This document shows positions 6,014 through 63,875 of a DNA stretch of 64,000 nucleotides, in pieces (position 1 is the stretch's first letter; every line of letters begins with the position of its first letter). The position numbers and the translations under genes are program-made. The notes under the pieces were generated by a model. It worked only from the letters and a program-made list of their open reading frames with translations. It did no database searches and had not been told where the DNA came from. Source of the stretch: Octopus bimaculoides (lineage: Eukaryota); the NCBI RefSeq assembly GCF_001194135.2, contig NC_068991.1:75414-139413 (forward strand). The letters are read 5' to 3'.

Positions 6014-6177
6014 ATGTCATTGACGTTGTCTTTCTCTCCAAGTTGAGGGAAGAACCACTCCCACTGGTCTTATGCGCTTTACTTTCCTATACACGGTACT
6101 GAATTGTTTACAGTCGTCTCTTTTGTCCAAGCCGGATAATTTGAATTCAGTTGTATCTACACAGGTATATTTCGCCG

Positions 6178-7896
6178 ATGTCAACTTACCTGAACAGCGG
6201 CCGGAGCCGCCAAAACACAATCGACGGCGACGATTTCTGGGCCGTGTCACAAATTGAACGTTCAGCCATCAAGTTTAATTTATTCGATGATGATATCTCT
6301 GTTGACAACGCATCAGATTTTGCTTCAAAGATCCTTTCATGTAGAGATGAAGAAGATGAAGTAAGTGAAAGTCTTGCTTCTCTCATAGACTGTGAAACTG
6401 CAACAACACCTGGAGACCACCCACTGGCACATGCTAAAAATCTGAGTTTAAAATCAAACCAGGCGAATCTTATATCGAGAACAGGCACACCAGCGAAACC
6501 CTCGAATTTACCAGGTAGCAATCAACATTGTTCATCTTCTCCTTCGACTCCAGCTACTGAGTCAAATAGCAGCAGTTTGCAACAAACAGGATCATCTTCC
6601 TATGGTCACGGCCGATCAAAAAGCGATACAACCAGTGCTATTCTACCTGATCCACACGCCAATACGAGGCGAGGTAGTCAACACACCTCTAGCCAAACAT
6701 TCCCTAAGCCTGGCTTCAGTTCTGCAGATTCTAACTTAAGTATAGATGATGTAATCGAAAAATCTGTTCCCAAAACAGCGTCTTCGTCATCCCTCCATAA
6801 ACTTGAAGCCGAGGTAATTTCTTTAAAACACTCACTAAGGACAGCTGATCGTGAAAAGTGGTTAAAACCTCCGATTTCTGAGACCCTCAAAAGAATTCGA
6901 GATGGTGAAGTCCACTCTGGCATTAATATGTACCGAACGCGTGAAGACAAGGTAGAGATTTTAAATAAAGCTACTGAAAGTCATGATGGTAACATAATTA
7001 TTACAGTTGTCCTATTTCTTCGCCAGACACTCAAAGACAGTATATTCCATGACATTCTCAAGAGCCATCCCATTGCTGCTAATCATTACACCAGTCATAT
7101 GCGGGCTCTGAAGAATTACTCTGAACTGATATGTTTTTTAAAAGGAATGGATATGCACGAGGAAGCTGCTATGACCATGTATAAGCAAGCAATCAGCTGT
7201 AAGGATTTAGCCAATAAGTTTAGCAGCCTCAAAAAATGTCTGCAAGAATACAAATCCAGTTACCCAGGTATGTCAACAGAACTTTGGTTGATTGAAAGTC
7301 AACTTGCACTTTTAGAATGGCAAAATACTGTTGAAAGTATGGATAAAAGTGACCAACGTAACACCATTTTACAAAAAATCCCACCTACAAAACCTCTCGT
7401 TGATACATCTGTGATTTATTCTTTATATTATAGTGCTTTGTATCATTACAATGACAAAGAAGCAGAATTTGCCTCACCAAATATCTTGCGCAACAAACAC
7501 CAATTAACAGAAAAACAGTTTTTATGGACAACTTTAACTGCCAGGGCTTACTTGAAAGCCTGGCCTAGCATTGAAGATATGTTAACAACAAAAGGTAATA
7601 TTTTCAGTGGCAAGAGACTTAGGGCAGTGATAGGACTTGATAAAGTTGCAGAACTATTGTATCAGTTCGGAGCAGAGGAGGCTGACATTAAAAAATACCT
7701 GTTGGCCATGAACGACAATGAAAAGTGTTTGCAACTTTCTCAAAAACTAAAATGTTATGAGACTTTCATTGAAACATGTGTTGCAATGAAAGATCGCCGA
7801 GAGCTGGAAATATTTGCTCAGAAATTTTCAGCAAATGCTGAGTTACATCAGAAAGCCATAGATGCTCTGAACACATCAACCATCAAATGGAAATGA
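6178..7896 (+). CDS. VIPAS39: Spermatogenesis-defective protein 39 homolog (VPS33B-interacting protein), 572 aa, single coding exon
   Basis: Recognisable motifs: DDFW...FNLFDDD N-terminus; SHDGNIIITVVLFLRQTL; SLYYSALYHY; QLTEKQFLWTTLTARA..KAW; IGLDKVAELL; C-terminal STIKWK. The ORF-track start is TTG at 6151; first ATG is 6178. Probable 5'UTR intron 5987-6164 (GTGAGA...ACACAG). Confidence 0.93.
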   Translation: MSTYLNSGRSRQNTIDGDDFWAVSQIERSAIKFNLFDDDISVDNASDFASKILSCRDEEDEVSESLASLIDCETATTPGDHPLAHAKNLSLKSNQANLISRTGTPAKPSNLPGSNQHCSSSPSTPATESNSSSLQQTGSSSYGHGRSKSDTTSAILPDPHANTRRGSQHTSSQTFPKPGFSSADSNLSIDDVIEKSVPKTASSSSLHKLEAEVISLKHSLRTADREKWLKPPISETLKRIRDGEVHSGINMYRTREDKVEILNKATESHDGNIIITVVLFLRQTLKDSIFHDILKSHPIAANHYTSHMRALKNYSELICFLKGMDMHEEAAMTMYKQAISCKDLANKFSSLKKCLQEYKSSYPGMSTELWLIESQLALLEWQNTVESMDKSDQRNTILQKIPPTKPLVDTSVIYSLYYSALYHYNDKEAEFASPNILRNKHQLTEKQFLWTTLTARAYLKAWPSIEDMLTTKGNIFSGKRLRAVIGLDKVAELLYQFGAEEADIKKYLLAMNDNEKCLQLSQKLKCYETFIETCVAMKDRRELEIFAQKFSANAELHQKAIDALNTSTIKWK

Positions 7897-8528: not shown

Positions 8529-8909
8529 NNNNNNNNNNNNNNNNNNNNNNNNNNNNNNNNNNNNNNNNNNNNNNNNNNNNNNNNNNNNNNNNNNNNNNNN
8601 NNNNNNNNNNNNNNNNNNNNNNNNNNNNNNNNNNNNNNNNNNNNNNNNNNNNNNNNNNNNNNNNNNNNNNNNNNNNNNNNNNNNNNNNNNNNNNNNNNNN
8701 NNNNNNNNNNNNNNNNNNNNNNNNNNNNNNNNNNNNNNNNNNNNNNNNNNNNNNNNNNNNNNNNNNNNNNNNNNNNNNNNNNNNNNNNNNNNNNNNNNNN
8801 NNNNNNNNNNNNNNNNNNNNNNNNNNNNNNNNNNNNNNNNNNNNNNNNNNNNNNNNNNNNNNNNNNNNNNNNNNNNNNNNNNNNNNNNNNNNNNNNNNNN
8901 NNNNNNNNN
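8529..8909. other. Assembly gap (N run) next to (TA)n and SINE sequence
   Basis: Run of N. Other gaps lie at 30251-30260, 38811-38820 and 41307-41353. Confidence 0.99.
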
Positions 8910-9249: not shown

Positions 9250-11130
9250 TTTAAGAGAGGAATATGTTCGCATGGATGATGGTTCACTTGCATTAAACAA
9301 GGCTGCAAATAGAGAGGTTTGGAGATGCCACTATGAAAGGTTGTTAAATAAAGAAAATGAATGGGAGAAAGAGAGTCTGCCGAATGCCAACCCAACAGAG
9401 GGACCAGCTATCTGAATTGACAGTACCTTGGTAGATAAGGCAATTAAGGGCATGAAGACAGGGAAAGCCCCCGACCCATCAGGAATCACCGCAGAGATGC
9501 TCAAACTATCTGGCAGTGTTTGCTATAGCCTAGTTACCCGTATAGTCAACCAGGTGATACATGAAGGAGTCATACCCAATGACTGGTGTAGCAGCACCAT
9601 AGTCAACTGCTACAAAGGTAAAGGTGACGTATTAAATAGGAATAATTACAGAGGTATCAAGTTGTTGGATCAGGTAATGAAAGTCACGGAGAGGGTCATA
9701 GCCCAATTAATTGGAGAGAAAGTCATCCTGGATTAGATGCAGTTTGGGTTCGTGTCAAGTAAGAGCACCACTGATGCTATATTTCTGGTAAGACAGCTGC
9801 AGGAGAAATACCTAGCCAAAGATAAACCTCTGTACCTGGCTTTCGTTGACATGGAGAAAGCCTTTGACAGGGTCCCCTGATCCCTTACCTGGTGGTCAAT
9901 GAGGAAACTAGGGATAAATGAATGGTTAGTGAGAGCTGTCCAAGCCATGTACAGGGATGCTGTCAGTAAGGTGAGGGTAGGCAACGAGTACAGTGAAGAA
10001 TTCTGGGTAGGGGTACCCCAAAGATCTGTTCTCAGCCCCCTCATATTCATCATAATCCTCCTGGCAATAACACAGGAATTCAAGACAGGATGCTCCTGGG
10101 AGCTCCTCTATGCTGATGCCCTTGCTTTAATTGCTGAGTCATTATCAGAACTAGAGAAGTTTTAGGTGTGGAAGCAAGGATTAGAATTGAAGGGCCTTAG
10201 AGTCAACCTAGCTAAAACCAAAGTCTTAATAAGTAGGAAGGCAGACAAACCACGAATCCCTTCAGGCAGATGGCCCTGCTTGATGTGTACAAAAGGCATA
10301 GGTAGAAACTCCATAAGATGTACCCAGTGTAAGCCATGGACACACAAGAGGTGTAGTAATATCAAAGGAAGGCTAACTGGGAAGATAGTTTTTGTATGTG
10401 GCAGATGCTCAGGAGTAATAAACACTGAAAATGTGCAGAGAACAACTTGTGTCACATTCCAGGGAGAAAAACTAGAAGTAGTTGATAGCTTCCGTTACCT
10501 AGGTGACCAAGTCAGTAGCAGGGGAGGGTGCACTGAAAGTGTAGCTGCTAGAATAAGAAAAGCCTGGGCAAAGTTCAGAGAGCTCCTACCTCTGCTCTGC
10601 TGGTGACAAAGGGTCTATCGCTCAGATTAAAAGGTAGAGACTGTGGCGCGTGTCTACGAACAGCCATGCTACATGGCAGTAAAACATGAGCCGTGACTAC
10701 TGAGGACATGCATAAGCTCGCAAGGAATGAAGCCAGTATGCTCTGATGGATGTGTAATGTCAGCGTGCATACTAGACAGAGTGTAAGCGCCCTGAGAGAA
10801 AAGTTGGACTTAAAAAGCCTCAGATGTGGTGTTCAAGAGAGACAACTGCACTGGTATGGTCATGTGTTGCGAATGGATGAGGATAACTGTGTGAAAAAGT
10901 GTCACACCCTAGCAGTTGCTTGAGAAGACCCATCAAGTCAAGTGAGACCGTAACCCATGACCTATGCCACTTATGAGTACCCTTAATTCATTGTACAATA
11001 AACCTTGCTTGCGAAGACCTGTTGAGGTAAGTGAAATCGAAATCACTGATGTGGCCAATGACAGTACCACCTGATTGGCACCCGTGCCTGTGGAATGTTA
11101 AAAGCACCATCCAAGCATGATCGTTGCCAG
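9250..11130 (+). mobile_element. 5'-truncated, degenerate RTE-clade LINE (RT domain, PHD-like finger, 3' UTR)
   Basis: Broken frames give KAPDPSGITAEMLK, NYRGIKLL, QFGF...STTDAIF, AFVDMEKAFDRV, GVPQRSVLSP, LLYAD, KGLRVNLAKTKV, FRYLGD, LRWYGHV. In-frame stops at about 9413, 9734, 9878 and 10163. Confidence 0.9.
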
Positions 11131-12610: not shown

Positions 12611-14419
12611 TCATAAGGACATGCTGTGTTGTTCTACTTTTACAGTGTAGTAACTCGGCTCATCAAGATAGTTATTGGACACCGAAACGTGGTCAATTGG
12701 TAACACACTGAAGAAGGAGATTGTCATCTGCTCGGAAGAATCTTTCACATTTTCAAATATTGTTTTCCAAAAATATGGTTGGGACTTGTCCAGGAAACTG
12801 TTGATACAGGAAACAGGAACAGAAAATTCAAAAGTCTGTTTACTTTCTAGTGGGTTACTGGTGAAATGCTTTAATGTAGTCAAAGCTGTAGAACTCAAAG
12901 TGGAGTGAGGCAGTTTAAGATATACGTCAAGTAAGGTGACCAACTCATAAACAATGTGTAGTTTTTCTAATCGTGACATTCTCTCTTGGATATTCCAGGC
13001 ACGGTCAGTGTAGAACTGTAGTTGGTCAAGTGTTGCAAGTTCGTTGGACACCAACATACTGATGTAGTCATTACATAGTTTCTCAACACCTATATCAATC
13101 AGTAGCTTCAATGGTACATAACCTTCCATGTCTGGGGTGTCCATACTGTTCATGTAGGAGCTGCGCACCAGTTCAGCAATACGAGTCTTGTTAGTCTTGT
13201 GCACCAATGGTTGTATGTTTTTACACTGTAGTTCATCAAACATGAAGTTTAGACAGTCAATAAGCTCTTCATAGCTGTGACAATTCATTAAAACATTCCA
13301 AACTCTATCAGAAAAGTCCTGATCTTTTCGATTAAACATAGGTATTTTGTGAGGAATTTCTTCATTATTCTCATTTTCATTGAAGTTATCATCAATGTCA
13401 GCATCACCAAGCTTTAAGTGTTCAAAAAGATTCTTCAAATCGTCAATAACAGATGTACTTTCAGATTCTGGCATCAACCAATTGACTTTACCTTTAGAAA
13501 GTCCCTCAAAAAATCCTCGCAGAGTTGAGAACTCTTGGAATTTTTTATAAGTTGGTCCCGTTTTATCTCCAGGCACAATTTTAACCTTGACAGTAACCCT
13601 AGCTTCAGGTGAAGGTTTATCCAAGTATTTCATGGATTTATTCCATTCTGCTTCGAGAATTATTTTACTCGTCTCTTCACTTTGATCATTATTCGAGGCA
13701 GTACTACTGTCAAACACATGATATTCTGCTCTGTTGTGGAGTTGGCGCATGTTTTCAGGAAAAGCATCAGAAGTGGAAGAAATGGAGGAAAGATTGTTAG
13801 TTGTTTGTGCAACAGTTATTCTGGAGTACAACAACATGTTGTTGCTATCAACATCGACTTCAGGTGAGACATAAACAAATGCTGTGTTTAGCAAATCTTC
13901 TCCATTGCAATACACCAAAATCGGAATCCGTTCTTCTTTGCTAACAGAATATTTGGGCGACAACATAAGAGAGCAGAAAACAGACAAGACACGTTTAGAA
14001 TATGAAAGACTAATGGGAAGAAACGAACTTTGGTTCTTTACATACACAGATTTCAAAGGAGAGACAACGACACGATTCAGATCGGCATATTCTTTCATTT
14101 CCAAAGGCGAACCTTCATATAAACTATTATTGTCGTCAGAAATATCACTCTTCTGAGAAAGGACATCAGATAGATTGCTTTCATATGAGTTGTTACGAGT
14201 TTTCACAGTGGCATTGTCTTTTCTTCCGAGACAAACCACAATAAACGGCAGAGTAAAAGAAAAGATGTTCTGCAAAATATCCAAATCGCCAAACAATGAC
14301 ACATCACGAACAATATATAACATCGTATCTTGAAACTTGATGACATTATTATTGGTCGTGGGGCTTTTGAAAAGCTTGCCGAGACATTCCTGAAATTGAG
14401 GAATTAATTTAATATCCAT
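12611..14419 (-). CDS. ZWILCH: Protein zwilch homolog (RZZ kinetochore complex), 602 aa, single coding exon
   Basis: Recognisable blocks: ILEAEW..., VKVKIVPGD..GP, GLSKGKVNW, RKDQDFSDRVW, IQPLVHKTNKTRIAELVRSSY, PLKLLIDIGVEKLCNDY, LEKLHIVYEL, NPLESKQTFEFSV. Acceptor ttttaAG| at 14427-14426, 6 nt before the ATG. AATAAA (-) at 12190-12195. Confidence 0.9.
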   Translation of the reverse strand: MDIKLIPQFQECLGKLFKSPTTNNNVIKFQDTMLYIVRDVSLFGDLDILQNIFSFTLPFIVVCLGRKDNATVKTRNNSYESNLSDVLSQKSDISDDNNSLYEGSPLEMKEYADLNRVVVSPLKSVYVKNQSSFLPISLSYSKRVLSVFCSLMLSPKYSVSKEERIPILVYCNGEDLLNTAFVYVSPEVDVDSNNMLLYSRITVAQTTNNLSSISSTSDAFPENMRQLHNRAEYHVFDSSTASNNDQSEETSKIILEAEWNKSMKYLDKPSPEARVTVKVKIVPGDKTGPTYKKFQEFSTLRGFFEGLSKGKVNWLMPESESTSVIDDLKNLFEHLKLGDADIDDNFNENENNEEIPHKIPMFNRKDQDFSDRVWNVLMNCHSYEELIDCLNFMFDELQCKNIQPLVHKTNKTRIAELVRSSYMNSMDTPDMEGYVPLKLLIDIGVEKLCNDYISMLVSNELATLDQLQFYTDRAWNIQERMSRLEKLHIVYELVTLLDVYLKLPHSTLSSTALTTLKHFTSNPLESKQTFEFSVPVSCINSFLDKSQPYFWKTIFENVKDSSEQMTISFFSVLPIDHVSVSNNYLDEPSYYTVKVEQHSMSL

Positions 14420-15711: not shown

Positions 15712-16407
15712 TTTTTACTTGTCATTAGACTGCAGCCATGCTGGGGCACTTCTTTGAGAAATTTTAGTTGAACTAATCGACCCCAGTATTTATTTTGAAA
15801 TCTGATATTTAATTTATTCTATGGGTTTTCTTTTGCCAAACCGCTGTTACGGGGACGTAAACGCACCAGCATCTGTCGTCAGTCATTGGTGGGGGTACAC
15901 ATACACATACAGTGGTGAACTGGGTCTGCAAAAATTGGTTGCCAGGAGACTAAGGGAGCCAAACTGCAACTACAGTGCTATCATATATTTATTTTTGTTA
16001 AAAGTATTCTTTTCAACTCTCTTCAAACACAGCCAGGTTGAAATAATTAATGCATTCTTTCCCCCCCACCCCCACCACCACATATAGGGATTGTAATGAC
16101 GCAGGGGCCCACTTGCTATCGGGCAGCTGGCAACCTGGCCAGTCCGCCGCTGCTTATATATATATATACATACATACACGACGGGCTTCTTTCATGTTCT
16201 GTTTACCAAACATTTTTTCATACTCAGAATTCCTGAAGCATGGAATAGAAATTCACCAACCGTACACTTGATGACCCCCCCAACCTTTGTTTCCTTTTCT
16301 TCTTTTTATTTCTAGTGCACCTGAGCACTATACAACATCATATGCCAAATCCACTCAAAAGGATTTGCTCGGTCCGAAGCTATAATAGAAGACACGCCCA
16401 AGGTGAC
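15712..16407 (-). mobile_element. Fragmented tRNA-SINE (3' part about 15712-15900, middle part about 16175-16407)
   Basis: Segments match the full-length copy at 25506-25928 (gactgcagccatgctggggcac..., cgacgggcttctttca..., gctataatagaagacac.cccaaggtg). Confidence 0.6.
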
Positions 16408-16562
16408 TATGTCAATTTTAAAAAGAAAATATAAGGGAACTGCGACATTTCCACACACACACGCACCTCCCTATAGCCAACTAATTGATAAATCTCCTAC
16501 ACCTTTGTCTAGTAGAGAGAGGAGTTGGATGAGATACTGTTGTGTGAATCCGATAACAAATG

Positions 16563-16573
16563 AAAAAAAAAAA
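16563..16573 (-). terminator. Pol III oligo(T) terminator of 7SK
   Basis: 11 A on the plus strand (T11 on minus), 12 nt after the 3' hairpin. Confidence 0.75.
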
Positions 16574-16858
16574 CGGGATGTGAATGGCATACTGCCACGT
16601 GCAGTGCCGTAGTGGAGCGTCATAATTTGAAGTCTCCCCCAACTTCCCAATTTGATCTACACTAGCGTGACAGAGAAGCCAGGTCGTACCTGTAATAAAC
16701 CCAATTCTTAGATATGGATGGGTGCGTTCAACCGTGCGCGAGGCAGCGGGAACAGCAACACCATGGATAGTGTGTGAGTGTAGGGACGCCTAACCTGGAC
16801 AGATCGGCCGAAAGTGTCAGCGATCGATGTTCAGATGGATCACCAAAGCACACGCTCC
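16570..16858 (-). ncRNA. RN7SK: 7SK small nuclear RNA gene (about 289 nt, Pol III)
   Basis: Minus strand starts GGAGCGU, which pairs with ACGCUCC (16620-16614) as the M1 closing stem. The 5' hairpin CAUCGAUCGCUGACACUUUCGGCCGAUCUGUCCAGGUUAGGCG resembles human CAUUGAUCGCCAGGGUUGAUUCGGCUGAUCUGGCUGGCUAGGCG. The 3' hairpin GGCACUGCACGUGGCAGUAUGCC (16608-16586) resembles human GGCGCUGCAUGUGGCAGUCUGCC. T11 terminator at 16573-16563 and TATA at -31..-24. Human sequences recalled from memory. Confidence 0.9.
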
Positions 16859-16881
16859 GAAAGTAAAGATTCAGCAATTGC

Positions 16882-16889
16882 TATATAAA
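16882..16889 (-). promoter_or_regulatory. TATA box of type-3 Pol III promoter (7SK)
   Basis: TTTATATA located 31-24 nt upstream of the +1 G (16858), the canonical U6/7SK position. Confidence 0.75.
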
Positions 16890-17106
16890 CTAAATATTAA
16901 GTTGTTTTTATTATGTACTGATGTAATAATTTTAGATGTGTTCATAAATTAATAATTTGCCCGTTTAATTTTTCATTTTATGCATTAAATAGATTTAATA
17001 AAGCATTTTAAATTTTGCTAAGTAAAATTGAAGTAAATAAATGAATTTTACTCCTGAATAAAAAGTATTTTATAAATTTACCTTATCAAATAGAGCAGTC
17101 ACTGAA

Positions 17107-17117
17107 TGCGCATGCGC
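17107..17117. promoter_or_regulatory. TGCGCATGCGC palindromic motif (NRF1-type)
   Basis: Exact NRF1-like consensus. It lies 249-259 nt upstream of the 7SK +1 and just upstream of a minus-strand donor (AAG|GTAAAT at 17081), so it could serve 7SK or ZWILCH. Confidence 0.45.
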
Positions 17118-18329
17118 GTAATTAGTATATACAACATATTATGTATCTGTGTAGACGTGTGTGTGTGTAATTGAGTTGATGTGTCTGGCTTGAAGTGGAA
17201 GGCTTGTAAAATAGAAAACAGGAGCCAGAGAATGTTTCGTATTTCGGCATTAGGAATCCTTATTATTTGAGGCTGCTGATGTTATTTTTCTTCTTTAATA
17301 CTTTATTCATTAAATTAAGAATTGATACAAGTTTCACAAAATCCTACATTTTATATTAAAGTATGTTAAATACTGTAAAGACGATTAAAATAGGTCAGAA
17401 CTGGGTCAATATAAAAATCCTCACCTGATAACGAAAAGAAAAAAAAAAGAACCGCAGCCTGCTGGGTGTTAACAGCTGTGTAGAAAACGAATATGACAAA
17501 AAATTTGCGCAAACGAACCTGGGAGGTGGGGAGAGGACTTTCGGAAAATTCACAAGATCTTAAACCCTGTCCTAAAACACTAATTCATAATCGTTAACTG
17601 AAAACTTTTATTCACTCTGTGTGTGTGTTGGCGTAGTTGTACGTGATAAATAGCTATGTGTAATTATGTGGTATTTCACTGAATTAGTTCATCATCAGCA
17701 GCATCATTGTTTAACGTCCACCTTCCATGCTGGCATGGGTTGGATGGTTTGACAGGCGCTGGTCAGGCAGGGTTTTTACAGCTGGATACTCGCTGCTTCT
17801 TCAGAATCACCTGCACCATAACTTTTGAACCAGTGATTTTTTTTTTTTTCAGATTCATGTCTTCGATATTATATCGGAGATTACAATTCCCTCCCCCCCT
17901 CCACCAAAAAAAGCTTTTAATTTGAATCCCCCCCACCTACACCCATCCACCCAATTTATTTGCTTTGTTTACAGCTGACAAGACATGCTGTCATGCACCA
18001 AATGACAGCTTTCAAATCCTGTTTCCTGATCGGGTGAAAATTATCAAACTTTAAGCCTCTGTAACTTTTTAAAAACATTTTTTCTGGGAAAAGTGAAACA
18101 ACTCCTGCAATTTAGCTTGGAAGTGTACATTATTGTGCCAAATTTTGAAATTTTTGATAAACTTCAATTTTTGAAATGCTGGTAGCCAAACCAACTAGAC
18201 CCATTATAGAACCATTAAAAGTTAGTGTCAAACATACAATGAAGTTGATTCAACTTTGCTTTTATGGCATTATCTACCTCCTTGCTCCATCACTATGTCA
18301 CTCCTGGCCAAGCTGGGATTCTGAACCCT

Positions 18330-29500: not shown

Positions 29501-32500
29501 CGAGAGTGTAGTGGATGCTTTTTACGTGCCACCGGCATGAGGGCCAGTCAGGTGGTACTGGCATTGGCCACGCTCAAATGGTACTTTTTACATGCCACCG
29601 GCATGGGACCAGTCAGCTAGCACTGGCATCAACCATGCTCTAGAAGTGATAATTTAAATGAAATTGAGTGGTTAGACATTAAAATGTCCTTACTTGGTAA
29701 ATATCTTCATTAAAATCTTTATATGGAGTTGGGATAATCCCATCAGAAGCCATTTCAGAAGCATAATATTGCATGGTCTTCATACAAAACACCTGTAAAT
29801 AAATAAATTAATATCGTCAATTCCTTGAGATTACAAATTGTACATTTATGGGAGGGAAATATACCTAGGTGGGTTAGGGTTAGAAATTCAAAGAAGGATT
29901 CATCATAGTCCTCCAGGCAATAACAGAGGAATTCAAGACAGGATGCCCCTGAGAGCTCCTCTATGCTGATGACCTTGCTCTAACTGCTGAGTCATTATCA
30001 GAACTAGAGGAGAAGTTTTAGGTGTGGAAGCAAGGATTAGAATCGAAGGGCTTTAGAGTCAACCTAGCTAAAACCAAAGTCTTAATAAGTAGGAAGGCAG
30101 ACAAACCACAATCGATCTGTACAAAAGGCATAGGTAGAAACTCCATAAGATGTACCCAGTGTAAGCCATGGACACACAAGAGGTGTAGTAATATCAAAGG
30201 AAGGCTAACTGGGAAGATAGTTTTTGTATGTGGCAGATGCTCAGGAGTAANNNNNNNNNNGGAAGGCAGACAAACCACAATCGATCTGTACAAAAGGCAT
30301 AGGTAGAAACTCCATAAGATGTACCCAGTGTAAGCCATGGACACACAAGAGGTGTAGTAATATCAAAGGAAGGCTAACTGGGAAGATAGTTTTTGTATGT
30401 GGCAGATGCTCAGGAGTAATAAACACTGAAAATGTGCAGAGAACAACTTGTGTCACATTCCAGGGAGAAAAACTAGAAGTAGTTGATAGCTTCCGTTACC
30501 TAGGTGACCAAATCATTTGTAGGGGCAGGAAGCTCTGAAAGTGTAGCTGCTAGGATAAGAATAGCCTGGGCAAAGTTCAGAGAGCCCCTACTTCCGCTGG
30601 TGACAAAGGGCCTCTCACTCAGAGTAAAAGGTAGACTATGACGCATGTGTGCGAACTGCCATGCTACATGGCAGTGAATCATGGGCCATGACTGCTGATG
30701 ACATGCATAAGCTCGCAAGCAATGAAGCCGGTATGCTCCAATGGATGTGTATTGTCAGTATGCATACACAACAGAGTGTAAGTGCCCTGAGAGAAAAGTT
30801 GGATTCAAGAAGCATCAGATGTGGTGTGCAAGAGAGACGGCTGCGCTGGTATGGTCATGTGTTGTGAATGGATGAGGACAGCTGTTACAGGAGAATAGTA
30901 TGGGATTATGTGATGTTCATTCTTCTCTTCCAATATATTAGTCTTCTCACTGATCTCAGACACAAACTTGTGAATTAAGTCATTCCTAAAATCTATGTAA
31001 AAAATGGAAATAAAACAAGGGGTGGAATTTATCAAAGTAAGGTCTGACTCCAGCTAAAGAAATATTTAACTATATATACACACACACATATATATATATA
31101 TAGGAAAGAGTATAATACAAATATCTTACTTCCTTGACAGATCTACTTAATCCAAGAGCAGAGTAAATCTAGAAAAAAAAAAAAAAATTGTGATTAAGTG
31201 ACAAAAAGTTACAAGCAAGATTACCCCCACCCCACGTGTATATCTATCTATACCTATAGTATAGCTCAGTTTGTGTGTGTGTGTGTGTGTTGCATCTATA
31301 GAAATCCACACCTTAACAAAAAGTTTTTTAAATGAATTCTCCGATATAGATCTCCACTCATCTTTATTCAGGCATATAATTTAGTATTTTATACACACCG
31401 GACCACTTGGAATTTTCATTTTTATTTTTTCCTTTAGACTCATTTACAACTCTTTCGGCTTTTCTATATTTATTATCAAGATCACACAGTGGTTGTGGGA
31501 AAAACTCTTTTTAAAAAACTTTAAAAATTCTATCTCTGATGAAGGAAATGCAGCCACCAAAGTCAAAGGAAAAAGTTTTTTCTTTGTGTATTCCCTGAAA
31601 CGATTGCAAGATATCTCACTTCATTATATTTTTATTTCAGCCATGAACTGCTTTATTTTTATTTCATTCGAGGACAATTTAAAATCGTTTTACTCTACTT
31701 AATTTTATTTCATTCAAGGGCTATCGTAAATCAACATCTCACCTGCTTGTGATTTTAATTTATTTTATCAGATGTAATTTTCTGTATATATCTTGTGATC
31801 ACCCAACCTTGGAATTATATAATAAAAATATATATGTATATATTTGATTGTATTCCCAATTTGAATATGTATTGGCCGGACAAGGAGGATGATAAATTAA
31901 TCTGTTTTCTCTCGCTCCTTGAACTTTGATATTTGCTCAATATATTGAGCCCTTCCATGTTATTCTGTGGAAAAAGTTATATATCATCATCATCGTTTAA
32001 CGTCCGCTTTCCATGCTAGCATGGGTTGGACGATTTGACTGAGGACTGGTGAAACCGGATGGCAACACCAGGCTCCAATCTAATTTGGCAGAGTTTCTAC
32101 AGCTGGATGCCCTTCCTAACGCCAACCACTCAACATTGTAGCTCACTTGAAGCATTGTAATAGAGAAGTAGAAAATGAAAGAAAAGAGAAATACGGAAAG
32201 CTTCTAATGATGCAGAGTTTTCAAAAGGAAAAAAGGAACTTTAAATTTTGGGTGCAAAGGCCTATCTTAGTCAAAGATCTGTGCATTTGCATAGATTTTG
32301 TTATTTTCAACTGCTCAGCATTTGGGTTAGCAGCAGCAGCAACTCTCCAACTGTTGGTAATATTTAGAATTCAACATTTCTGAAAAATATTTTTAAATGT
32401 CTCACATTTTTTGAAGAATCTTGAAAAGAAGGGAAAGAAGATTTCGTTTCTGCCAACCACTGTTTAATAGACTTCTGTGATCCAAAGAAAAGAAGTAGAA

Positions 32501-36278: not shown

Positions 36279-39200
36279 ATAATAATAATAATAATAATGG
36301 GTGTTCTTGAAATGTCTCTAACTAATCCCATGCTAGCATGGAAAATGGATGTTAAATGATGATGATGATAACCCCTACACATTTAGGGTTAATGTAAGAA
36401 AGGCCAAGGCAGTATTTGAACTGATGAAATCATCATTTCTAACAGCTTTACCACTAGATAAAACAACCCACAATACCATAATTTAGTTAAAATTATTTAC
36501 CTGAAATGCTTTCCTAGCTGTAAATCCAGTTCCTTTCGATTTTGAATGCCAAGGCTGTCGTAAATTCAGTAAAACAGGAAGAAGTGAATAAAAAATGTTT
36601 TGTTAGATAAAAAAAGAATTTCAAACATTAAATATTATCACCATTATCATTACTATTCTATACATCTACATTTTGTCCTATTATAATCAAGCAGGAATAT
36701 TTTTTGTCACCAACTCGAACTTGTATATATCATTAGAGAAATAGTTTTAAAATAAGTTCCCTACTTATAGCAAACTAGTCATACATGATGTAGGAATTGT
36801 ACCTGGGGAAAATAAGGAGACAAAAAGTTTTATGGGTTCATTCTTAGAACAACCAAAAGTCTTTTGCTATTGTTTTTTGTGACTTCGATTAAATAATAGA
36901 CAGATGCATTGAGTTATATTGAAATTGAAAAATTAAGTTTAATTTTCAGATGTCATTTTTGCAACAACAATGTCACACTGCAATGTGGGTTTCAAATTTT
37001 GGCACAAGGTTAGCAATTTTGGGGGAGGAAGGAAGTCAATGACATCAACCCCCAACTGATAATTATTTCATTGACTCCAAGAGGATGAAAGGCAAAGCTG
37101 ACATTGGCAGAATTTGAACTCAAAATATAAAGACAAACAAAATACTTGGCAGCATTTTGCCTGGCAATGCTTATAATTCTTCAAAATAACCACTTCACAC
37201 TAACATAGGTTGGATTTTTTTAACAAAGTCTTTCAAAGTCACTTTTTTTCTCTACATTTAACAGCTTCTCACCCACATGACTGTTTATCCATAAAATTAT
37301 GTTTGGGTAGTTTAACTGTCAAGTAAAGGACACACTTCACCTAATAAGGTTCCTTGTGCTGATCACAAAGTCTATATCACAACACATTTACCACAGAATC
37401 ACTATATTAAATACTGAGCTTATGTCATCTTATGCTTTCATAAATTCATCTTGCAAATTTTAAATTTGAATACCTTACCTTCTAAACAACGTATTGTATG
37501 TGTTGGCGAGCTGAAACATTTTTCCCACTTTTGAGGAAATGAAATTTTCAAGACAATCTGAAAAACACAAATTATATAATGAAAAGTTAAATAGGGGTTT
37601 CACATGCACATAAGGGCAAGACAAACAAATCACAGTTTTGCAAGCTCACAAATGCAGGGGCCATGATAAAACACTCAGTGCATTCTGTATAGTGGTTGTC
37701 TGGCAGTATAAACCATGCTCAAACATTGAACGCTACACAGTCCTCAGACCTTTCAGATCTTATCAAACTCTCCAACTAAAGACAGCAAGTAAGAAGGTGA
37801 TGTTGATGTGGTATTTGATTTTTATTGAGAAGAGACTCAAGGAAAATAGAAAGCAAAGTCGATCTGGGCAGGATTCAAACATAAATCATTCTACTGATTT
37901 TGCCACTAATATGTTAATTATTTAGGTTCAAAGTCAATTGAAGTTGATTACATTGAATAATACAGTATATAACTGGTGCTGCATATATCAGCTTTAGTGT
38001 ACCTGTTCTTTCCTGGTTATTAATTACACTGACCTTAAACATTAGGATTGTAGAATTACTAAAATTCTAGCTTATGGAGCAACACGTATCGCAAAGATGG
38101 TACGTTTCAAAGAAGGTACAACATTGGCAACATCAATAATGCTGCCAAGGTCAGTGCTTGGGTACTCAGCACTTTCGATCAGCCCTGCAATGTACACTAC
38201 CAACTTCTTCAACAACACCTTCCAACTAACCATCTTCACTACACCAGCAGGAAATTGCAGTCAAAAAAAAAAAAAGATCAATAGTTTTATGATCAAGCAC
38301 ACCGTGGAGTAAATTTGTAACTCGGCAAAATTTGAAATATTTCACACCAAATCGTGTGACAGGCCATATCACCACACAACCCTCTCGCCCCCTTCATCCC
38401 CCAACTCACGTTGTCTCATCTTCTTTGTTCCGGGAGTGTTCCCATGTTCTTATTAAGTTGTTATTAACTAGATTTAAAAAAATTGTGTAAGTTATTTGAG
38501 TGCTCCAGGCGATCGTCCATTCAAGAGAACAGGCTCTAGCAGCCCACTTTAGAGTAAGAAAAATTGGTAGAGCGCCGAACATCTTTGCAGTATTTAGTTA
38601 GCATTAGGAAGGAATTTCAACCATGTTTCGTGGTCTGCTACCACAACAGCTCCTTTATAGGATCCAGTTAGCTCAAGACATCATCAGGAGGAACCACGTC
38701 CGGTTTCGGCCCCTACTCCTCTACCGTTTTGACGTGGCGGGGCCCCTCCTTTCGGAGGTGTCTTCAGCTCTGGTGTTGGGTGCATGTCTTCTTTCGCTGT
38801 TTGTGACTGTNNNNNNNNNNCTACCGTTTTGACGTGGCGGGGCCCCTCCTTTCGGAGGTGTCTTCAGCTCTGGTGTTGGGTGCATGTCTTCTTTCGCTGT
38901 TTGTGACTGTTCTAATTCAACTGTGGAATGTCTCTCGCTATGGTTATTTTCCAGGAGGTTCTGGCCACACGTCTTACGGTTCATCAACCCGCGTTGTTGA
39001 ATTACTTTCTTCCGACATACCTTCCCTTGTGTACATACCTTCCAAGTTGTGTACAAAAAACTGTCCTGCAAAATGGAAACAGCAAACTGAATTTATTTAC
39101 GCTTATATTTCACTGCACAAATGTTAAGAGATGAAATATATAAAGAAAACTAGTTTCTTCTTTCCATTTACATTCTGTGATCAAATCTAGACGAGGTCAG

Positions 39201-39892: not shown

Positions 39893-41840
39893 GTAAGTCA
39901 ATATTTTTACTCAATTCTCCACAATTTTTCTTAAACTTTGTCGACTTTTCTTCTTTTTTATTCATTAACTTTTATATTCTCAATTTATTTGTTCGTTTTA
40001 AATAACTTAATTTCCTCAAACGTCACTTTTCCATGGGCCTTCTTCAATCTGCTAGAAATAGCAGCTAATTCTCTCTCGAATTTCGCCCCAAAATTAGGAA
40101 GTCCCTGTTGGATAAGGTAGTCCTCTTTTCTATTGTCTTTGAAAAAAGACGGAATGGTCATAACTGGATTAGAGAGGGAATCAATCCTTGTAAGGGGACA
40201 ATCCCTTCAGTAGAATTACAAAGTTGCCTTTCTATAAAAATAATTTATCTTTTCATTCTCATGAATTATTAACAATTCTGTCAAGAATAGCCACACAGGT
40301 ATGTCTGGGGTTATAGTGATTGTATAAAACACACCCGACTATGTATTGTTACATATGAAACCCAGTCAAACAATAATTGAAAGAATAACTTAATACAAAC
40401 GAATGTCAAATTGTTGCACCGAAACGGTTGACTTCCAACTTTGGCCGGTTTTTGATGCGAAGTCGATCTTTTCCTTGTGTGTCTATGTATGTATTGTGGT
40501 TGACCACTTCTTTGTACCTATACCGTATGTACACATACGTACGTTCTTGAATCTTTTACATTCGGCCTGTTTTGTGACACACTGATGCTCTCATATATAT
40601 ATATATATATTAACAAGGTGGGGACGACCCCATTGTCTATTTATTGTATCACTTATTCAGAGCTGCCCACAACGAAACGCATTCCTTTAGAGTGGGAATT
40701 AAACATGTATGGTTTCAATATCGTAGATTATAAAAGCCTGATCGAAATATTTTAGTGAACTCTGCTAGACATCGTCTTTCCCAATGGAAACCGGACAAAT
40801 TAGTTTCCTTCGATATCCAAACAATACGTCAAGGGAGTAAAAACGTGACATTCTGTACTCAGGAACAACTAAAACCTAATAGATCGTGGCGATCTTGCAT
40901 GGTTTCACCTGTGATGGCCAAAACAAACCTTTAAGAACCAATAATAACTGTTCTTTCATTGGAATTCTGTATCTATAACAGACAAAACTACATCTCAAAA
41001 TTAGACTTTCTCTTTAGAACGAAGAAACTTCTTCAGCTGCTGACTCTATACAAGTCACAATGTTTCTCATATCCCTGAGATAAAACACCTGATAAACGTA
41101 CAAATATTCTTGACCATCTCCTTAAAATAGCACCACTCACACACATTCTACTAACACTAACATAAACATAGTGTCATCTGTTCCATCACCAAAATGGGTG
41201 ACCTGTTTGGCCCTAACATTTCAAAGATGACAAAAAGAGTTGTAAACAATCATTTCTTTCATAACCAGGAATGTTTCTGTTCCTTTATATATATATATAT
41301 ATATATNNNNNNNNNNNNNNNNNNNNNNNNNNNNNNNNNNNNNNNNNNNNNNNTATATATATGTATATATATATATATATATACTGATATATAACTTCTA
41401 TAGACCAATACCTACTGAAGACTTTCTCACATGTCACCAATGATCCTTCATTTTTGACAGTATTGCTGACTGAACATCAGGTAAAACCTTCAGCTACATC
41501 TTGTAAGAACCTCCTGGCTATACTGACTATCTCCGGTCTATATTGTTTTCTTCTACCATGTCATTGCAGCATGTCGCAGTTGGCGCTCTGTCTCTCTCTC
41601 TCTCGACTCTGGTGTTCCCTAGAGTTTGTCTTTCCCACAGCCATTCTACTGTAGACTAAGGACCAACTTACATCCGTTTGAATAATACTTCTACCCAGAT
41701 ACGGCAGGTATCCTGCACAAGCAACCTCAACCTCATGGAACCAAGCTGTGTGTCTGATTTATGTCCCACTTTGTAACTTTTGGTGCTTGTTTGCTTCAAT
41801 GGATTTCTCAAAAAATATCCTTGTAATATCTTCTTTTTAA

Positions 41841-63875
<22,035 letters not shown>

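Follow-up and report, generated by a model that had tools for sequence, protein, structure and literature searches.

The 7SK RNA is a small nuclear RNA that restrains the transcription-elongation kinase P-TEFb. Mammals possess one source gene for this RNA together with many 3′-truncated pseudogenes, and the human 7SK pseudogenes are of this 3′-truncated, diverged kind. Gruber et al. in 2008 and Marz et al. in 2009 reportedly described the 7SK RNAs of molluscs and annelids. The human system is the best characterized, and its biology includes a switch between linear and circular forms and the participation of MePCE, LARP7, HEXIM, and P-TEFb (PMC10083321). A role for a third GAUC motif has also been described (PMC10083321). 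Knowledge of the family in molluscs and annelids dates from 2008 (cited in PMC10083321 and PMC2995076). In invertebrate 7SK RNAs, conservation is found in SL1 and SL4 and is lacking in the central stem-loops, SL3 in particular (PMC10083321). The hairpin with paired GAUC motifs is the mapped HEXIM1 site, and in vertebrates and lophotrochozoa such a site is recognized by two paired GAUC motifs, 6–30 nt apart, with bulged pyrimidines flanking them (PMC2995076). Among the papers searched, none joined 7SK with cephalopods or octopus genomics.

The window analyzed here is a stretch of 64 kb from the genome of Octopus bimaculoides, and its positions 16570–16858, on the minus strand, very probably constitute the single intact 7SK snRNA gene of this octopus, expressed and with protein partners that would parallel those of the human RNA. 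The gene spans about 289 nt (approximately 286–292 nt), with its 5′ end at 16858 and its 3′ end inside a T run; in assembly GCA_001194135.2, it occupies about 91,983–92,271 of record CM046611.1. RNA positions are numbered from nt 1, which corresponds to window position 16858 on the minus strand. The whole 64-kb window was scanned on both strands with all 4227 Rfam families, a scope covered by the E values. The sole match at gathering level was RF00100 (7SK), at 16579–16858 (−), with 54 bits against a gathering threshold of 35, an E value of 2.9e-11, and coverage of model positions 1–331 without truncation. A prior reading of the letters alone, referred to below as the sequence-only reading, had recognized a 7SK gene here by its structure and had proposed a covariance-model search with RF00100 as a check; this match agrees with that identification. 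The arthropod 7SK model (RF01052, clan CL00013) scored below RF00100 and was displaced as an overlapping match of the same clan. The posterior of the RF00100 alignment was maximal at the RNA start, two GAUC segments, the apex of SL2, and the entire 3′ hairpin; confidence was low in SL3, a region of reduced length in the octopus RNA, and the central third was poorly aligned. This pattern, with SL1 and SL4 well aligned and SL3 not, agrees with the published picture of invertebrate 7SK (PMC10083321). The gene forms a G+C island: its G+C content is 52%, and that of the 300 nt upstream is 23%. Neither a second 7SK copy (blastn with short words) nor a tRNA or other RNA polymerase III gene (Rfam scan, ARAGORN) was found in the window. 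Public sequencing runs, used as assembled contigs with guessed RNA or DNA labels and with organisms coded A, B, C, and E, were compared with the locus. In the order of transcription, its elements are the following.

16902..16926 (−): candidate proximal sequence element TTACATCAGTACATAATAAAAACAA, −44 to −68, proposed from position and conservation
16882..16889 (−): TATA box TTTATATA, −31 to −24, unchanged in O. sinensis and in the contig of organism B
16852..16858 (−): 5′ strand of the closing stem SL0/M1, GGAGCGU, nt 1–7; the centroid structure contains SL0
16838..16841 (−): GAUC1, nt 18–21, able to pair with GAUC2 to give the SL1alt hairpin
16799..16830 (−): distal SL1 hairpin, nt 29–60, predicted HEXIM site, from the fold and the Rfam posterior ('*') over CAUCGAUCGCU and CGGCCGAUCUGU
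16716..16739 (−): conserved central block GCGCACGGUUGAACGCACCCAUCC, nt 120–143, SL2 region, aligned to the Rfam consensus gcGCGCuCgGucgAAGA
16614..16620 (−): 3′ strand of the closing stem SL0/M1, ACGCUCC, nt 239–245, perfect complement of nt 1–7
16586..16608 (−): 3′ hairpin SL4 GGCACUGCACGUGGCAGUAUGCC, nt 251–273, predicted LARP7 xRRM site, posterior '*' throughout
16563..16573 (−): predicted RNA polymerase III terminator (T11) of exactly 11 T, source of the 3′ U tail

Every motif on which the sequence-only reading had based its identification lies where that reading had put it. These include the GGAGCGU/ACGCUCC closing stem (nt 1–7 with nt 239–245), three GAUC motifs at nt 18, 34, and 54, of which the latter two pair beside a pyrimidine bulge, the central block at nt 120–143, the 3′ hairpin at nt 251–273 with maximal posterior, the TATA box beginning at −31 (16889–16882), and the terminator of 11 T (16573–16563). 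A fourth GAUC, at nt 202, was absent from that reading.

The closing stem SL0 consists of seven Watson–Crick pairs, and its 3′ strand ends 5 nt before the 3′ hairpin. Compared with the Rfam RF00100 consensus GGAUGUG/CACAUCC, which is vertebrate-dominated, positions 4–7 are altered on both strands with pairing kept, so that four of the seven pairs differ and all four are compensated (from consensus to octopus: U-A to G-C, G-C to C-G, U-A to G-C, and G-C to U-A). In shuffled sequences, the 5′ end finds a perfect 7-nt complement no further than 20 nt from the 3′ hairpin in 0.1% of cases. The same nt 1–7 can alternatively pair with CACAC..UCC (nt 84–94), forming the base of a 'linear' SL1, and the two duplexes are nearly equal in energy, at −11.2 kcal/mol for SL0 and −11.6 kcal/mol for the proximal SL1.

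In the fold of nt 27–64, the GAUC at nt 34–37 pairs with that at nt 54–57, 16 nt apart, with U32-C33 and one C (52/53) bulged. With this spacing and these bulged pyrimidines, octopus SL1 has the paired-GAUC arrangement described for HEXIM sites. The fold of nt 12–44, which contains GAUC1, gives a 9-bp stem (nt 13–21 with nt 34–42) of −7.7 kcal/mol. Since the alternative pairings of the 5′ end and the pairing of GAUC1 with GAUC2 are all present, the elements of the human linear/circular switch are all retained. Toward the middle of the molecule, the posterior of the central block GCGCACGGUUGAACGCACCCAUCC against gcGCGCuCgGucgAAGA is high over its first part. The SL4 hairpin, with a fold energy of −10.4 kcal/mol and a sequence identical in O. 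sinensis, is followed by a U-rich 3′ end, the T11 run lying 12 nt downstream of the hairpin. The folding energy of the whole molecule is no better than that of shuffles (z = −0.65), which places the 7SK signal in specific motifs, not in overall stability; we give this value no weight in either direction. Sequences within the genus are nearly identical and provide no covariation of their own. A metagenome scan for distant 7SK RNAs through their 3′ hairpin returned 13 loci, one of which was 7SK; this one, at 169 bits, is vertebrate-like and cut at its 5′ end, and is therefore of no use for lophotrochozoan covariation.

From the 3′ edge of the TATA box it is about 24 nt to the start nucleotide G1. 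In O. sinensis, the box and the following 13 nt are unchanged, and the T11 run is conserved as well. The TTACATCAGTACATAATAAAAACAA block is identical in O. sinensis at 24 of its 25 positions amid varying neighboring upstream bases, and differs at 2 bases in organism B. This block at −44 to −68 is the leading candidate for a proximal sequence element, an assignment that amounts to a guess. No octamer-like distal element was found within 600 nt upstream, a difference from vertebrate 7SK genes. Judged from its sequence elements, the combination of an upstream TATA box and a T-run stop fits the layout of an upstream-promoter (type 3) RNA polymerase III gene.

Transcription of the locus is evident in public data from several organisms. 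A contig of 265–279 nt lying within 16573–16849 was present in 11 of the 13 RNA or guessed-RNA runs, these 11 coming from four coded organisms; the twelfth run has one chimeric contig, and the contig of the thirteenth runs on upstream. Six runs of organism A (X11, X12, X18, X20, X28, and X1) contain one such contig each, of 265–276 nt within 16574–16849, and the adjacent flanks show nothing continuous with the gene in the RNA runs of this organism. These contigs carry no differences from the locus, as is also the case for organism B (X15) and organism C (X16 and X17), and organism E (X32) carries two. Two contigs of organism B reach past the gene, which indicates that some libraries hold DNA or read-through.

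The 5′ end of the transcript was located by a contig of run X30, with a depth of 317, that matches the locus up to 16858 and then passes directly into CCCATGTACTCTGCGTTGATACC, which we take to be the reverse complement of the SMART/10x template-switch oligo. This junction indicates that the cDNA, and hence the RNA, starts at G1. In the sister run X1, depth exceeds 11,000 at 16833–16856 and is zero beyond 16868. The expectation of an abundant RNA of about 290 nt starting at 16858 is thus borne out by discrete contigs and by the template-switch junction at that position, with abundance gauged roughly from contig depth. On the 3′ side, the gene contig stops at 16573–16581, the edge of the T run, in 11 of the 13 runs; the X30 contig breaks at 16586, and that of X25 continues to 16552. 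The 3′ end is accordingly bounded by contig stops, not by read-by-read mapping, and stops at the T run are the outcome expected of variable U tails in an assembly graph. At RNA nt 3 (window 16856), one template-switch junction contig in X1 reads C, where the DNA runs and X30 have A; the C could be a minor variant or could have arisen as an artefact of reverse transcription close to the 5′ end.

The genomic neighborhood of the locus is shared with a related species. The window contains a ZWILCH open reading frame at 12611–14419 (−), encoding 602 aa (Pfam PF09817, E 2.6e-59), whose closest homolog, with 94% identity, is from Octopus sinensis. In that species, a 7SK ortholog (55.5 bits) precedes ZWILCH on the same strand; the distance between the two is about 1.9 kb, compared with 2.15 kb in the window. 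The two genes are identical at 286 of 289 positions, against 216 of 241 ungapped columns upstream (Fisher p = 1.5e-6), and the downstream flank breaks up into indels. The three substitutions, U118C in the SL2 loop, U129C in a poorly aligned stem, and C284A in the single-stranded 3′ tail, spare SL0, SL1, and SL4. A contig of organism B shows the same contrast: its gene is unchanged, and the 101 nt upstream carry 8 changes (p = 1.9e-5). Constraint on the 7SK gene is much stronger than on its flanking sequence, and among related octopus species the RNA hardly varies. Synteny with ZWILCH in other cephalopods, which had been suggested as a check, holds in O. sinensis and fails further away: no 7SK was found by Rfam search (E up to 1) or blastn within 10 kb of ZWILCH in Argonauta hians (ZWILCH identity 67%) or in a more distant ZWILCH contig (49%). 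On present sampling, the linkage is seen in two Octopus species and is not seen outside this genus.

The copy number of the gene was assessed in three DNA runs of organism A, in which single-copy depth is about 11–17. Unitigs identical to the window cover 16165–16691 (unique downstream flank into the gene) and 16823–17484 (gene into the unique upstream flank), both at this depth, which implies that the exact gene sequence exists once; between them, the assembly graph branches. At 80% likeness, 36 contigs match, and their summed depth peaks at about 340, equivalent to roughly 20 diverged 7SK-like copies. They show 80–90% identity, are mostly 3′-truncated, lack a promoter, and begin at the RNA 5′ end. 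Several of them start at 16848–16856 (RNA nt ~3–11) and end together at 16663–16668 (RNA nt 191–196), and one is nearly full length (16578–16848), with 36 substitutions and 12 gapped positions (~83% identity). The promoter region 16856–16920 is single copy. Because the copies start where the RNA starts and the promoter exists once, an RNA-derived origin is indicated. The sequence past the shared 3′ end of the copies is T-rich in the RNA sense, not A-rich.

Diverged pieces are also found in RNA runs. Some, matching 16773–16850, lie inside contigs of 404–1071 nt, and one of them reaches a depth of 99.5 in X28, compared with 111.7 for 7SK. In another, with single-copy DNA depth and a depth of 95 in X1, 55 nt (16717–16771) are replaced by 9 nt. 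The shared end points, the transcribed pieces, and the copy of nearly full length could suggest that the roughly 20 copies represent a 7SK-derived mobile element or a second functional 7SK-like RNA, as put forward for Drosophila (PMC8406779). We consider this reading very unlikely, its support being copy number and incidental transcription.

These copies, together with the limited strength of the family match, bear on two other explanations of the locus. A GC-rich structured segment might score against the 7SK model by accident, and the 54 bits of the octopus gene are indeed modest beside the 169 bits of the partial, vertebrate-like metagenome copy, just as the central third of the RF00100 alignment is poor. 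An E value of 2.9e-11 with coverage of the full-length model speaks against such an accident, as do a discrete transcript whose 5′ end coincides with model position 1, a TATA box and a T run that are rightly placed, and conservation of the gene far beyond that of its flanks. Expression and conservation rule out a chance resemblance, and the probability left to it is vanishingly small. It is also very improbable that the window copy is itself one of many 7SK pseudogenes or repeats, with the real gene located elsewhere. The roughly 20 diverged copies, with their summed depth of about 340 against 11–17 for a single copy, could suggest such an origin, and so could the copy of nearly full length at ~83% identity. 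However, the window sequence equals the RNA contigs base for base; at 16765, for example, the gene and all RNA contigs have G, and most diverged copies have T. Its exact k-mer paths run at single-copy depth and are continuous with unique flanks, the TATA box is found only at the window copy because the upstream region is single copy, and the syntenic sequence in O. sinensis is conserved under a constraint far above that of the flanks.

RNA identity, copy depth, the TATA box, and synteny largely refute the pseudogene reading, and the window copy, which matches the RNA and has no other exact counterpart in the DNA reads, is the source gene and not a pseudogene. The description of a retropseudogene does not suit this copy: it has a TATA box and its full length, its sequence is identical to the RNA, and it has a syntenic counterpart in O. 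sinensis; the same description fits the other roughly 20 genomic copies. The sequence-only reading had named many degenerate dispersed copies as a finding that would speak against it, and about 20 such copies do exist, with the window locus still exact, promoter-bearing, and RNA-matching. Its proposal that this is the functional cephalopod 7SK locus is supported by the family match, the discrete RNA, the source-gene status, and the O. sinensis ortholog, and protein binding would follow by analogy with other 7SK RNAs.

If the octopus RNA operates as human 7SK does, it would be transcribed by RNA polymerase III, MePCE would cap and hold its 5′ end, and LARP7 would bind the 3′ hairpin and the U tail (UUU-OH). 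The motifs of the 5′ hairpin and the human precedent suggest that the paired GAUC/GAUC helix with bulged pyrimidines may bind a HEXIM dimer, which in turn would capture and inhibit P-TEFb (CDK9/cyclin T). In the modeled pairings, nt 1–7 could join either nt 239–245, giving the closed 'circular' form with SL0/M1, or nt 84–94, giving the base of the 'linear' SL1, and GAUC1 could replace GAUC3 as the partner of GAUC2. This switch between linear and closed pairing might accompany the release of P-TEFb, as in human cells. A true, expressed 7SK could also act in cephalopods mainly without P-TEFb and HEXIM, for instance in the transcription of snRNA genes or with other partners, and P-TEFb-independent roles of human 7SK are published (PMC10083321 and PMC3064786). 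This alternative is highly unlikely for the octopus RNA: the GAUC/GAUC helix, the most HEXIM-specific element, is intact and invariant in organism A, O. sinensis, and the RNA contigs of organisms B, C, and E, an invariance that is hard to explain without a HEXIM interaction. The preferred reading is an octopus 7SK that would restrain P-TEFb through HEXIM.

In common with vertebrate 7SK (human RN7SK; RF00100), the octopus gene matches the family model end to end and has three GAUC motifs in its 5′ domain, a GAUC2/GAUC3 helix with bulged pyrimidines, SL0/M1 in the same position, and an SL4 of nearly identical sequence. Both have one source gene, with a TATA box near −30 and a terminator made of a T run, and both are accompanied by many 3′-truncated, diverged copies. 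There are also differences. The octopus RNA measures about 289 nt against 331–334 nt in human, with a shortened and poorly alignable SL3, and the single strand between SL4 and the U tail has 12 nt instead of about 3 nt in the Rfam consensus. The SL4 bulge reads UAU in octopus and UCU in human, at a place where the Rfam consensus is variable; in human 7SK, C320 and U321 matter for LARP7 (PMC10083321). Set against published descriptions, not sequences, the 7SK RNAs of molluscs and annelids, which belong to the same superphylum, agree with the octopus RNA in the hallmark hairpin with paired GAUC motifs (PMC2995076) and in the conservation of SL1 and SL4 but not of the central stem-loops (PMC10083321). 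Arthropod 7SK (RF01052, clan CL00013) is a homologous RNA with the same logic of 5′ and 3′ hairpins, and its model gives the lower score on the octopus gene. The octopus RNA is nearer to the vertebrate and lophotrochozoan type than to that of arthropods.

The locus provides a verified octopus 7SK gene with a mapped 5′ end, a terminator, a TATA box, and a syntenic ortholog, which is useful for annotation. Its promoter is a candidate RNA polymerase III promoter for genetic tools in octopus, and the RNA adds a lophotrochozoan data point in which both ways of pairing the 5′ end, closed (SL0) and linear, are kept far from vertebrates, together with all three GAUC motifs. Knowledge of 7SK itself is unchanged, given that molluscs were already known to possess this family and that the locus turns up in a standard Rfam scan; this is an ordinary member of the family. 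The NCBI pipeline annotates Rfam matches above threshold. As the locus passes the Rfam threshold of standard pipelines, it is probably already labelled automatically in public annotation.

The surroundings of the gene are rich in repeats. High-copy repeats flank it at 15800–16410 and 17440–17560 and are abundant in the RNA runs too; a repeat at 16166–16226 has a summed word depth of about 4e5 against about 11 for a single copy, equivalent to tens of thousands of copies. ARAGORN found no tRNA-like part in these flanking repeats. A transposon-like open reading frame occurs in two copies, at 10166–10606 (+) and 30022–30306 (+), which share MWKQGLE.KG.RVNLAKTKVLISRKADKP... and show a weak PHD-finger match, and fragments resembling retroelement proteins lie nearby at 9428–9736 and 49910–50341. 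Assembly gaps, present as N runs at 8529–8909, 30251–30260, 38811–38820, and 41307–41353, sum to 448 bases. A protein with a Vps16_C domain is encoded at 6151–7896 (+) by an open reading frame of 581 aa, called as 572 aa. This frame and that of ZWILCH are each uninterrupted, and the two genes converge, tail to tail, with about 4.7 kb between them.
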